A stretch of 57,121 nucleotides of DNA from Macrostomum lignano (taxonomy: Eukaryota): assembly GCA_002269645.1 (NCBI GenBank), contig NIVC01004167.1, positions 1 through 57,121 on the forward strand. The letters run 5' to 3'. The translations under genes were made by a program, and so were the position numbers. Positions within the stretch are counted from its first letter, which is position 1, and every line of letters starts with the position of its first letter. A model generated the notes under the pieces. The model did no database searches. It saw only the letters and a program-made list of their open reading frames with translations, and had not been told where the DNA came from. Positions 16,111 to 32,908 of this stretch are shown here, in pieces.

Positions 16111-19100
16111 ATGTCTGCTGGCTGCATTGAAGCCAAATACAAGCCTATTGGCCTGGATCAGCTGTCTGGTGAATACCTCTAATTAACTGTTACTTTGTCT
16201 CTATAGGGGCTTCTGATAGTGCTGTTTTCAAATTTAAGCTACAACCCAACTTGATGTAGCTTAATTCCAAGCACTAACATACATGCGCAACCTCCAAAAT
16301 TCGGTCGGCCGTGCGACTTAGTTTTAACGAAAATGCGACGTAGTTTTTGGCCAAAAATGCGACTTACATGTAAAAGAAACCCTCAAGCAAAATTAACGCA
16401 ACTTGGTTAAACGGCAGGAGTAACTATGACTGTCTTTTTAAGCCAAAAAGCCTCGTCATCTACTTAGTACTACTTTGGTATTTATTTGGGTGGGCATTTT
16501 TGCGACTTACCTAGGTTGGCCGCCAAATCGGTCGGCCGACTCAGTCGACTTGCGCATGTATAAGCACCAAGACATAGGGAATGTAGGATTTTAGGATAGG
16601 GAGATTTTTCATCACACTTGATTTTATCAACTCCAACTTTAATACGAAGTAGAAGCATAAATACCTATCTATTTAAATGAAATTTAAAATTGAAAACTAG
16701 TTCATCTAAAACCCATTTAGAATAATATTATAAGATCCTTTCAAAACCAGCTAATTTATCAGCCAAAATATTAAATTATAGTTTATTACTTATTCCCTAA
16801 TTTTACTAGTTAAAAAAACAAGTGCTCTTTTTCCAGAATTTTATTTAAATAAACTATTCTTGGTGACTGCTTTGTAGGGGATTGACAGATGGAGGTTGCC
16901 TCACCACTAAAATATTTTTAGCAGTTTTGTCCTTCTGGGCATCCTTTAAGTGCCTGGAAAAGTTTCAGAAAATTGGAAGCAATTTGTCAACCTAATTACT
17001 TGAAGAAGTCCGAATTGTGCCTGGTCCCGCTGTAGCCGGTTTTGCATTCAAGAGGTTTAGATTTTAAGTTCGGAGAGAAGTACACGAATTCTCAACAACA
17101 CTGAACAGTCTCCAGCTTTGAGAGTGCGCCGTAAATTCTAGCCCATGGTATTGAGTTTGAAGTGACGCAACTTGCGCCACGCGACGCAGAGTTGGGCTGC
17201 TGGGTGAGGAGGGATTTGGAAGAGCGGAGGGCGAAGATTAGATGGATTGAGCTTCCCCCCGATTTTCATTGTTTTTAAATATCAAAATGGTTGGCCCGGT
17301 GATAGACGCTGGTCGAAGGACACTGATCACTGGGATAAAGAGTGGCGACTTTTCAATGTTGCTGAGTATACTTTTTCAGCGACTTTGCTGGACTTGTGGT
17401 CAGCCTTTGCTGAAGCACAATTCTTAAACTACCAAATAAAAATTGGTTGATATGTACTATAATGAAGTTTCAAATATACAAATAATGTTAAACTGCAGTC
17501 CACGTTTGATAAAAAAACGAATTTGATCCTGTAACGATCAAAAGTCGGAACCAGATAGTTCCATCCATTATTACGAGTAATGCCCCTCAGGGGTTTGATT
17601 TCTCTTAAGATATCTCGTCAGAATTCTCGTCAGAATTTTTGTCTATGGCGAAACCCCATTTAACGCTATATGCATTCTCTAGTAGAGACTACTAAACGTA
17701 CTACATGGCGAAACGATACACGTTCGTTACCAATCTCCAGGTCATTTCTAAGAAAATCCAGTTCAGCAGATCCAGCTGTTTGATTTTTCCATGCCTTCGA
17801 AAGCTTGTATGATATAAAACTATATAACATCACAAATTTTACATTTCATCCACATTACATATGTAACTTGTACCCATGCATGGTTGCAGTGAGCCTGTTG
17901 ACAGATTGCTCACACGACAGCAAGCTGATAAAGTGCGGCTATATCTGTCGCAGAGAGAAGATAGCGGTATGCGTTGCTGGCGGCTCATCCACAGGTGCAG
18001 CTGCAGGCCCTGATCAGGAATTTGATGACAACTGTGAGTGACAGGTATACTGCTATATATACTTAGGTCCTCTAAAATTTGCATAATCTCAAATGCTTAT
18101 CTAACTTAAAATTCCAGTCGTTCTCTACTATGCGGTACTTCGTGCCAAGCAATTGTTTCTATTCCACAATGAGGACAGCACTCAGTGCAAGGAGGTCATC
18201 ATCTTAAGCCAGTTTGAGTAAGAGCTGGGTCGTTTTAATTTTTTTGAGAGAGCTTTCTGCAAATTAGTCGTAATCAACTGCAGTCCTTGACTTAGCAAAC
18301 CTTGGAACCGTCCAGCAGTACATATAACTCTGGATTGTCAGATTATTTGTTGACAACGAAATTTATAAATTATCTAATTATCTAGCATGAGGTAAAATGA
18401 GTTTTCGGGTTGGCAGGCGTCAGTGTTTGATGCACCCGATATAAAAGTCTTCAGCGGTTGTCATCTGAGTTTCATTACACTGATGCGCGTGGCGTCTACT
18501 TACAACTGAAAGTGGAAGCAGTCGTGACCTGAGAGGGTCACCTGCCAATCCGACTGTGCCGATTTGCGATTGGTGTAAAAAATCGGTTTCGAGCTGGGGA
18601 TAGCGCCTCCAGGTTGCCTGGAGCATGATACCAACGATACCAATGGCGCAGGTGGGAACCGGGATCCAGTTTAGGACCCTTAACTTACTTGACTTTGCTG
18701 CAGGGTGGTTAAATGACGCAAGATGGAAGTTGACCGCCTGAAGGGCCCGCATATAGATTAAGTAGGGACGATGGAGGCTCGTCTGGTACATTAGCCCGGA
18801 GGAACCGGATGAGCCGTGGGGATATTCTCATCGAATGACGTGTTAATCCCGAGGTGGTGGAGCTGGGCCCGGCTGAAGGCCAAACGCTAGCCCAGTTCAG
18901 GTCCATGAGGAACCAGATGATTCAGAGTCACAGCTTTAGCAGGGGCATTAGCCAGCTCATTCCCTTGAATCCACTGCAGCTTCCAATGGTCCCTACCGAG
19001 TACCGCATGTCGAGTAGCTCTGCGGTGCAGAGTTTAATGGCGAGGACTTGGTTTAGTTTACCCAATACGATGTTGGCTGACTATTTGGACCAATCGATAC

Positions 19101-31600: not shown

Positions 31601-32908
31601 TGCTGAGCTTTCAAGCAACCACCAGGGCTCTCCTTTCCCCCCCCGTTCCACTTTCTCACGCCTACACGGGTTGGGCCGACCTCAAGCCCACTACTGTATT
31701 GCTATTGGCTGGCTACTGTGCGTGTTGGTCGGCTGAAGCTTATCGGTTTTCTAATTGGTTGATTAGGCCGGCACGTGATATTGACTTGTAGCTGGTCGAT
31801 ATCCTACTTAATCAGTCAAAATTTTCCGTTGCAGAATCAATTCTACTTGGCTAACTCTGGTCCTTCCGGCATCGTCAAGTACGACTCGCTGGAGGATCTG
31901 CTGGTCAGTTTGCACAGCTCCAGATTCCCAGTTACCGTGTCCAAGAATAAAATTTTGACGACTCTGCAGACGCCGTATCAGAACTCTAAGTCAGTTGCTA
32001 GATTTGATGGAGTTTTGTCACCTTAACTTGGTCTCGTGTTTATTTCGATGTAAGTACATTCACTTCTATCCATTTTAGAGCCTGCAAAGCCAAGCAACAA
32101 TCGCTGCTGCTCGACCCGCTGAGGCAGCGGATTTTTCACCGCGGCCAGGAAGATCAAGCCGTCAGGGCGCTGCGACTGCCCAGCACTCAGAGTGGCGCTT
32201 TCGTTGTGTGGCTCACCTCCGCCACTGAGGTCTCTCTGATGGTGCGCGGCCAGGGACAGCGAGTTCTCAGCTTCAAAGTTGTCTGCACACCTACCGGATG
32301 CCGGGCCCTGCCGGAGGTGGGGGCTGGGGATGCTGGGGTGTTGATGAATGGGATGTTGGGGTAATGGAAGGGGATGCTGGGTAATTCATGGAGATGATCC
32401 TGGGGTAATGATGGAGGAGATGTTGGCTGTTGCTGGAGATGATCATGGGATGAGATAATTGATGAAAGGAATTGTTAGGGTGTTAATGGAGGGGGAGTTG
32501 CTGAAATCCTGCGGCTTGTTGGAGTTGCTCAGATGCTTTAAGCCAAAGGTCATAGGGGACGCTGATTTCTTAGGCTAGATAGCTGGCTTTTAAGGCAGAT
32601 GACTTTCCTTAGGATACTAACACTAGCGACTGTACAAGGTCAGAACCTACATGTAGTTTGTTTAACAGTTTCTCTTTTTCTTTGTTGCGTCCCCAACAGG
32701 GGGGCGCAGGTTGCTAGTCCACTATACTAAAAATAACTTATCTTAAAAAAAACTGTGATTTCAGCGCGCTGTTTACCTGGAGAAATTACCCGAACTGAAA
32801 TTCGACAGCATCGAGTCTCTGGTTGCACACCTGCAGTGCAATCCAGACTTGCTGATGCCGGAGCTGCCAGGCAGGCTGACACAGCCAATCAGCTGCCGAA
32901 ATCTGTGA
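25653..32908 (+). CDS. Paralogue B: SH3BP2-like PH + Pro-rich linker + three SH2-like domains, ~632 aa. Exons 25653-25695, 26392-26499, 26603-26702, 29822-30442, 30555-30845, 31311-31376, 31448-31580, 31835-31989, 32079-32316, 32765-32908
   Basis: All introns are GT-AG with the same phases as paralogue A. PH exon WAVLQSDCLLLFDSSISRSCSEAIYLSGF resembles SH3BP2 ([22 protein letters not shown], from memory); GYICR is shared with A. SH2-like motifs: DPGTFLLA...FDTLEQLVFHYHLHP; QGTYSLR...YVLSVR...YDSLEDLL; SGAFVVW...FDSIESLVAHL. Confidence 0.8.
26082..26353 (+). mobile_element. ~300-bp dispersed repeat, copy 2
   Basis: Shares AAAGAATCACGTGACACAATTTGTTATCAGTGCA and the terminal ATCATACTACTG with copy 1. 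Confidence 0.6.
26885..28620 (-). pseudogene. Decayed Ty3/Gypsy LTR-retrotransposon internal fragment (gag, zinc knuckle, aspartic protease, N-half of RT) in intron 3 of paralogue B
   Basis: - strand from ATG at 28504: MANFISLPLPEPF...WAAWSSRFDDF (gag, with in-frame stops); a CxxCxxxxH knuckle near 28070; protease VLVEGDPLDMMVDSGAICNIM (27623-27991); RT PWVSRMVVVPKSSGGVRMCKDLR...AIPTLDEV...LFSELDICKAFYQ. Truncated; no LTRs recognised. Confidence 0.88.
28650..29705. repeat. 29-bp minisatellite (CTGACCTACATTCTCGACCCATTAGTCCT), ~36 copies; one orphan unit at 26858-26884
   Basis: TACATTC at 28681 and 28710 (period 29). Confidence 0.95.
30864..31268. repeat. (GATA)n microsatellite, ~100 units, intron 5 of paralogue B
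   Basis: Near-perfect AGAT run. Confidence 0.99.

Follow-up and report, generated by a model that had tools for sequence, protein, structure and literature searches.

Adjacent genes of Macrostomum lignano encode putative adaptors with a PH-like region, a Pro/Tyr linker and three SH2 modules

The SH2 domain is the textbook phosphotyrosine reader; proteins usually carry one or two copies, and nearly all copies have the phosphate-binding Arg. STAP-1/STAP-2 and SH2B/APS/Lnk combine a PH domain with a single SH2 and have no enzyme domain. The tandem-SH2 proteins (SHP2, Syk/ZAP-70, PLC-gamma and PI3K p85) have two consecutive phosphotyrosine-binding SH2 domains with short linkers, next to a partner domain of catalytic or regulatory function. 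The vertebrate protein SH3BP2 (3BP2) is non-catalytic and consists of an N-terminal PH domain, a Pro-rich linker with docking Tyr and a C-terminal SH2 (PMC3359958). The Arg of the FLVR motif, at position betaB5, binds the phosphate; according to a review, it is invariant except in three human SH2 domains (PMC12470777). The window analysed in this study spans all 57,121 bp of contig NIVC01004167.1 (Macrostomum lignano, assembly GCA_002269645.1). It carries two adjacent genes on the + strand, g1 (16111-23354, with its ATG at 16111) and g2 (25653-32908, with the end of its stop codon at 32908). We believe, with a probability of roughly 0.7, that these are two intact, maintained paralogues encoding non-catalytic scaffolds with a probable PH domain, a Pro/Tyr linker and three consecutive SH2 domains.

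The two proteins resemble SH3BP2 in being non-catalytic and in having an N-terminal PH-like region, a Pro-rich linker with Tyr motifs and SH2 at the C-terminus. SH3BP2 has one SH2 that keeps its Arg, whereas the M. lignano proteins have three, mostly without it. The RSPPDG tankyrase motif of SH3BP2 is absent from them, and their PH-like domain is without an obvious basic lipid-binding signature. The SH3BP2 family is defined by a PH domain, a Pro-rich linker and a single C-terminal SH2, and proteins with three SH2 modules fall outside this definition. No SH3BP2-specific similarity was detected, and no SH3BP2 chain occurred among the PDB matches listed for the SH2 or PH profiles. With the tandem-SH2 proteins, the likeness lies in the consecutive SH2 domains and short linkers, and these proteins also gave the best sequence and structure matches. 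The M. lignano proteins differ from them in having three SH2 modules, no catalytic domain and one Arg-bearing pocket per window protein; the definition of a tandem-SH2 enzyme or regulator (two SH2 plus a catalytic or partner-binding domain) does not describe them. STAP-1/STAP-2 and SH2B/APS/Lnk are similar in pairing PH with SH2 and lacking an enzyme domain, but each has a single SH2, and relatedness to either group was not detected in any search of this analysis. The three human SH2 domains without Arg also show that the fold can carry another residue at betaB5 (PMC12470777). They are isolated exceptions, whereas 7 of 9 copies in the M. lignano family have His, Ala, Val, Leu, Trp or Gln at this position.

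Gene models, paralogues and distribution

Gene models were assembled on the + strand from its open frames and GT-AG sites. GenBank already contains a g2 annotation (PAA48358.1, 632 amino acids (aa)), and the exact spliced mapping of this protein gave 10 exons of 43, 108, 100, 621, 291, 66, 133, 155, 238 and 144 nucleotides (nt), with intron phases of 1,1,2,2,2,2,0,2,0 and GT-AG ends at every intron. In g1, the exons of 100, 60, 136, 152 and 235 nt have strong GT-AG sites, and the exons match UniProt A0A1I8FWC5. The results confirmed the two adjacent 10-exon genes that the initial annotation had placed at 16111-32908, and its near-identical exon sizes (100/100, 60/66, 136/133, 152/155 and 235/238 nt in g1/g2) were all found. 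The mini-exon of 60 nt in g1 and 66 nt in g2 is shown by database proteins, A0A1I8FWC5 and a third paralogue.

The whole g1/g2 pair is duplicated near-identically on contig NIVC01003038.1 (locus L003), where the g1 copy lies at 2906-8452. The exons of the two loci differ by 0.65% (27 of 4145 sites) and by a single 9-nt in-frame indel, with 0 frame-breaking indels; the alignable introns differ by 1.2% and by 25 indel events. Both genes have uninterrupted frames from ATG to stop in both loci. Between the window and L003, the ratio of nonsynonymous to synonymous change (pN/pS) was 0.20 for g1 (8 synonymous and 5 nonsynonymous changes) and 0.18 for g2 (9 synonymous and 5 nonsynonymous changes). 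These comparisons indicate that g1 and g2 are intact and under purifying selection (pN/pS ~0.2).

The same comparison bears on the junction after the g1 large exon, for which there are three options: 20394|21224 (phase 2, as in g2 and the third paralogue), 20341|21228 or 20332|21228 (both phase 0). Among the exon chains enumerated, only 20341|21228 gives 748 aa for g1. The initial annotation had given 748 and 632 aa for the two products together with identical intron phases. The 632 aa agree with PAA48358.1 and the phases are exact for g2, but because the 748 aa come from a phase-0 chain, the phase identity may fail at this one g1 intron. Donor 20394 is weak. Within 20342-20394 the duplicate loci differ by two substitutions, both nonsynonymous, and this speaks slightly for the shorter large exon.

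The proteins of g1 and g2 are about 20-25% identical overall, and their C-terminal halves align in BLASTP with 22% identity (E=5e-9). The highly diverged paralogue pair of the initial annotation is therefore real but distant. To this pair we can add the third paralogue, g3 (PAA90348.1), at another locus (L002). It has the intron phases of g2 plus one extra linker intron, and its mini-exon of 60 nt makes this exon common to g1, g2 and g3. In the SH2 region, g1 is 36% identical to g3 and 20% identical to g2. Since g1 is nearer to g3 than to its own neighbour, the adjacent pair is old and did not arise in the recent genome duplication. The GenBank annotation of the assembly was built from RNA-seq transcript assemblies (PMC5730564), and the exon chains of g2 and g3 are therefore transcript-derived.

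The g1 and g2 proteins are present in UniProt as uncharacterised 'SH2 domain-containing protein', and g1 was found only in older UniProt/WormBase models. One of these, A0A1I8GKD5, wrongly joins g1 to a splicing-factor gene that lies upstream. Among the public models of the family, A0A1I8FZL4 lacks the mini-exon and A0A1I8JF29 is chimeric (1416 aa). HMMER was run exhaustively over 1.84 billion cluster representatives, with the most conserved exon pair as query and a threshold of E<1e-3, and returned 8 proteins. Four were M. lignano family members (g1, g2, g3 and a chimeric model) and four were unrelated repeat proteins; canonical SH2 proteins of any organism were absent below this threshold. 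Because the scan gave only M. lignano relatives, the small family of g1, g2 and g3 appears so far in this species only, in agreement with the lineage-specific origin proposed initially. The further proposal that this is not a described family stands in part. No paper describing this architecture or these genes was found in the literature, but the proteins are already in UniProt, and g2 in GenBank, under generic names.

SH2 modules, PH-like region and linker

A profile was made from the six domain copies of g1 and g2, aligned without reference to any SH2. Against PDB, its best match was the C-terminal SH2 of SHP2 (E=2e-8), followed by the SH2 domains of Src, Fyn, Yes and PLC-gamma1, and all 60 matches listed were SH2 proteins. 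Three-paralogue profiles of the single positions matched the Src SH2 with the first module (E=5.8e-4), the p85-alpha SH2 with the second (E=0.065; 17 of 18 matches SH2) and the Blk SH2 with the third (E=2.4e-3). The positions are also linked to one another by hhalign, at 8e-7 between first and second, 2e-5 between second and third and 8.5e-3 between first and third. The mini-exon supplies the second module with its Trp-containing first strand and first helix (W.LGD..C, conserved in g1, g2 and g3).

AlphaFold modelled the second SH2 of g2, from an alignment of nine paralogous domain copies, with a predicted local distance difference test score (pLDDT) of 83 and a predicted template modelling score (pTM) of 0.75. 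The model has the helix, antiparallel sheet and helix sandwich of the SH2 fold. Foldseek matched it to PLC-gamma1 (E=7e-5, template modelling (TM) score 0.69, root-mean-square deviation 2.0 A over 109 columns), then to PLC-gamma2, EAT-2, SAP, SOCS3 and BLNK; the best 50 matches were all SH2. Three lines of evidence thus support the three SH2-like domains claimed at the outset: profiles against solved structures, the hhalign links and, for the weakest module, a confidently predicted model. We accept three SH2 folds per protein as supported, the first and the third by sequence profiles. The Pfam scan gave no catalytic or other domain, with phosphatase, kinase, PLC, RhoGAP and SH3 all absent from the matches, and the non-catalytic nature of the proteins was upheld.

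The betaB5 residue was read from family alignments with the SH2 domains of Tensin-2, p85 and Blk. In the first module it is His in g1 (GSFVVH), Ala in g2 (GTFLLA) and Val in g3. In the second module it is Leu in g1 (GTFALL), Arg in g2 (YSLR) and Val in g3, and in the third module it is Arg in g1 (ACVR), Trp in g2 (GAFVVW) and Gln in g3. The Arg is therefore gone from 4 of the 6 window copies and from 7 of the 9 family copies, and is kept in two (the second module of g2 and the third of g1). This feature was absent from the initial annotation. With Arg in only 2 of 9 copies, each window protein has at most one canonical pocket. Canonical phosphotyrosine function seems doubtful for most SH2 copies, and their membership of the SH2 fold stands.

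At the N-terminus, the pattern G(Y/F)IC...(Y/H)(Y/W)AV(L/I)...L(F/L)LF...HLG(W/C)...S(N/Y)W(Q/E) is kept in all three paralogues. Against PDB, the three-paralogue profile of this region matched PH domains in 4 of 5 cases (PKD3, SKAP55, PKD2 and ARHGAP25), with weak values of E=0.07-0.8. UniProt automatically names N-terminal fragments of g3 'PH domain-containing protein'. The invariant Trp falls within a predicted C-terminal helix (SNWQ / YSWE), where model confidence is <35. The basic strand-1/strand-2 signature for high-affinity phosphoinositide binding was not seen when the region was read from the sequence. The PH domain named in the initial annotation is thus probable but statistically not significant.

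Between this region and the SH2 array lies a linker of about 150-250 residues, described as disordered, with acidic Tyr motifs and PxxP runs. In g1 it contains EEMIYTTLD, KEQTYETPD, PTPPPPPAVPAKPLKPQK and RPTPPIPAPRGR; in g2, ADSTYNEAS, VHSIYDRCS, RPPPPPVP and LPPPPPPVPPPQP; and in g3, DEAIYDDAT, VEDVYDEAT and DEDHYEIPD. By their sequence, the Tyr motifs look like kinase target sites and the Pro-rich runs like SH3 ligands.

Proposed role and alternative explanations

The architecture suggests that the proteins may be adaptors that act after tyrosine kinases in signalling. Their PH-like domain would bring them to a membrane or to a partner. Other SH2 and SH3 proteins would dock, as they do on SH3BP2 or SLP-76-type adaptors, at the PxxP runs and at the linker Tyr (YTTL and YETP in g1, YNEA and YDRC in g2). 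The Arg-bearing SH2, the third in g1 and the second in g2, may read a phosphotyrosine site and act as an anchor. The Arg-less SH2 folds could make phosphotyrosine-independent contacts or form a rigid intramolecular platform. A more specific proposal is that these are flatworm-restricted adaptors whose three-SH2 array is mainly phosphotyrosine-independent, with one reader each at most, and forms a new composite recognition or autoinhibitory platform. We put this forward tentatively, as a possibility to which we give well under even odds.

Several observations weigh against two maintained scaffolds with a probable PH domain and three SH2 domains. GenBank lists no gene for g1 on either of the two contigs that carry the pair (NIVC01004167.1 and NIVC01003038.1). 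Single sequences stay under the Pfam cut-offs, with a best score of 17.5 bits against a gathering score of 21 for SH2 (PF00017) and 12.8-13.8 bits against 25.1 for PH (PF00169); of the HMMER check suggested initially, it is the family profiles that match solved SH2 domains. The AlphaFold/Foldseek check likewise gave an SH2 fold for the second module of g2 and an unusable full-length model. The latter, made from seven sequences, has a pLDDT of 33.6 and was not used as fold evidence; for this model Foldseek returned only SH2 proteins, with weak E-values. The folds of the first SH2, the third SH2 and the PH region are therefore taken from sequence profiles. The confident model of the second module of g2 comes from a mixed nine-copy alignment and therefore represents the family consensus. 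All functional statements are drawn from the architecture.

The module order is that of SH3BP2, with PH, a Pro-rich linker with phosphorylatable Tyr and a C-terminal SH2 (PMC3359958), and the three SH2 copies are interrelated, which fits internal duplication. The genes could then be divergent flatworm orthologues of a known PH + SH2 adaptor (SH3BP2, STAP or SH2B-like) whose single SH2 was triplicated, and would be fast-evolving members of a known family instead of a family of their own. We consider such an origin unlikely: the Src family, SHP2, PLC-gamma, p85, Vav, SOCS and Tensin dominate the SH2 matches listed, with no SH3BP2 chain among them; the best PH matches are PKD, SKAP55 and ARHGAP25; the exhaustive scan gave no canonical SH2 protein at E<1e-3; and the tankyrase-binding RxxPDG motif is absent. 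Another explanation for the missing Arg is that g1 and g2 are decaying or functionless duplicates, in which its loss would mean relaxed constraint and not new function. The 7 of 9 SH2 copies without betaB5 Arg, a divergence so high that Pfam thresholds are missed, and the absence of g1 from the transcript-based GenBank annotation would agree with it. Decay nevertheless has a very low probability in our judgement, given that the window and its duplicate locus each carry both genes intact, that exons have 0 frame-breaking indels where introns of similar length have 25 indels, that pN/pS is ~0.2 and all splice sites are canonical, and that transcript-derived models exist for g2 and g3.

The public models differ in detail (the A0A1I8GKD5 fusion, A0A1I8FZL4 without the mini-exon and the A0A1I8JF29 chimera), as would be expected if the three-SH2 product were a gene-model artefact in which separate small genes or foreign exons had been wrongly joined. 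Such an artefact is hardly credible when exon order, phases and the three-module layout are repeated in three paralogues at two loci and the reading frame is unbroken from ATG to stop in both duplicate loci. Moreover, every SH2 copy is split by introns, and therefore no module can be a free-standing gene. We thus retain the reading of two maintained, non-catalytic scaffolds with three SH2 domains. If it is true, a maintained family with three SH2 folds in each member, most of them Arg-less, would be a natural experiment in the reuse of the SH2 fold, in a flatworm amenable to RNA interference and transgenesis. It would also mean that lineage-specific signalling adaptors can be overlooked when automatic annotation gives them generic names. 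Its impact is restricted by the single species so far, by parts (PH, SH2, Pro/Tyr motifs) that are all familiar, and by a role that is only predicted.

Exon positions and surroundings

All features of g1 and g2 are on the + strand. Exon 1 of g1 (16111..16168) starts with ATG, encodes MSAGCIEAKYKPIGLDQLS, ends at the phase-1 donor gtgaat and gave a 100% tblastn match to residues 1-19 of A0A1I8FWC5. Exon 2 (17890..18033; alternative acceptor 17905; 143/144 identical in L003) begins the PH-like domain with KCGYICRR at 17931-17954. The 100-nt exon 3 (18118..18217), 100/100 identical in L003, holds the PH-like middle strands (YYAVLRAKQLFLFHN). The large exon (19384..20341, with donor 20332, 20341 or 20394) carries the end of the PH-like region, the linker and the start of the first SH2. 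Its landmarks are SNWQAHI at 19541-19561, Tyr motifs at 19865-19882 and 19952-19969, PxxP runs at 19985-20038 and 20078-20113, and SYFYQAF at 20285-20305. An extra g1 exon at 19197-19285, which would leave a 52-nt intron and complete the PH domain, was rejected: it has a 10-nt indel in the duplicate locus and shows no BLASTP similarity to g3.

Exon 5 of g1 (21228..21523; alternative acceptor 21224; 300/300 identical in L003) encodes the core of the first SH2, with GSFVVH in strand betaB. The second SH2 is spread over the 60-nt mini-exon of phase 2/2 (21620..21679; first strand and first helix, IWCLGDKPLCL; conserved in g2 and g3), the 136-nt exon 7 (21756..21891; central sheet, GTFALL) and the 152-nt exon 8 (22346..22497; C-terminal half, KFDSLEKFLMHYH). 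The 235-nt exon 9 (22578..22812) encodes the N-terminal two thirds of the third SH2, with its Arg kept in GSACVRT at 22690-22710, and exon 10 (23247..23354) encodes the end of this module (EIEFESMDKLLMY) and the stop codon. At 22668-22712, A0A1I8FWC5 reads GGGGSLVRLRPHETLL, while the window and A0A1I8GKD5 read GGGGSLVVSIKRLGSACVRTETLL. The variant reading deletes the Arg-bearing strand of the third SH2 and is probably a model or assembly error of the older entry.

The g2 positions come from the spliced mapping of PAA48358.1. Exon 1 (25653..25695) holds the ATG, exon 2 (26392..26499) the PH-like start (GGYICRL at 26436-26456) and the 100-nt exon 3 (26603..26702) the PH-like middle strands (HWAVLQSDCLLLFDS), with a weak Pfam PH match. 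The large exon (29822..30442) contains the PH-like end (SNWQHQL at 29934-29954), the Pro-rich/Tyr linker and the start of the first SH2 (LDYVATA at 30381-30401). An earlier acceptor for this exon, 29708, was rejected, as was the extra g1 segment; the annotated models already hold the full PH-like layout. Exon 5 (30555..30845) encodes the core of the first SH2 (GTFLLA). The second SH2 follows in the 66-nt mini-exon (31311..31376; first strand and first helix, LWTIGDKEMCS), the 133-nt exon 7 (31448..31580; central sheet, with the Arg kept in GTYSLR at 31470-31487) and the 155-nt exon 8 (31835..31989; C-terminal half). The third SH2 is encoded by the 238-nt exon 9 (32079..32316; N-terminal two thirds, RIFHRG...GAFVVW) and by exon 10 (32765..32908; ELKFDSIESLVAHL), which includes the stop codon. 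The locus tag 'Mlig002108g2' had suggested g1 and g2 as one trans-spliced operon. This idea was dropped, because the tag uses g1/g2 to tell apart near-identical copies that lie on separate contigs.

An (AGAT)n microsatellite at 30864-31269, with about 101 units, lies in the 465-nt g2 intron ahead of the mini-exon. In L003, the same intron (16615-20091) is about 3.5 kb long, a sevenfold change in length between flanking exons that are 99% identical. Minisatellites were found in a g1 intron (21934-22264, 31-bp x 10.6), in most of the 2.3-kb g1-g2 spacer (23688-25177, 11-bp x 133) and in g2 intron 3 (28651-29706, 29-bp x 36.6), the last of which ends about 115 bp upstream of acceptor 29822. Two retroelement remnants lie on the - strand: one at 26879-27991, inside g2 intron 3, with a weak aspartyl-protease match (E=7e-4), and one at 37359-38232, with a reverse-transcriptase-like YIDD motif and no Pfam match at E<=0.001. 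At the g3 locus L002, the adjoining 579-aa gene (21330-28264, - strand) has no Pfam hit on record and showed no similarity to g1, g2 or g3 in tblastn.

About 2.6 kb upstream of g1, an exon of a serine/arginine-rich (SR)-type splicing factor lies at 13058-13537 on the + strand, with a Pfam RRM_1 match (E=3e-12) and a Gly/Arg-rich stretch. The strongly C-rich strand of 1-12000 (guanine-cytosine (GC) skew -0.3 to -0.6) carries repeated Ser/Leu-rich frames, with copies at 5118 and 7584, about 2.5 kb from each other, that share an N-terminus; the region resembles a large block of dispersed or tandem repeats. Downstream, the - strand of 41488-46304 has long frames made up of the collagen triple-helix repeat Gly-X-Y, which Pfam Collagen matches at E=1e-17 to 1e-48. 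In L003, a 1769-aa gene lies downstream of the duplicate pair, at the place that matches these collagen frames.

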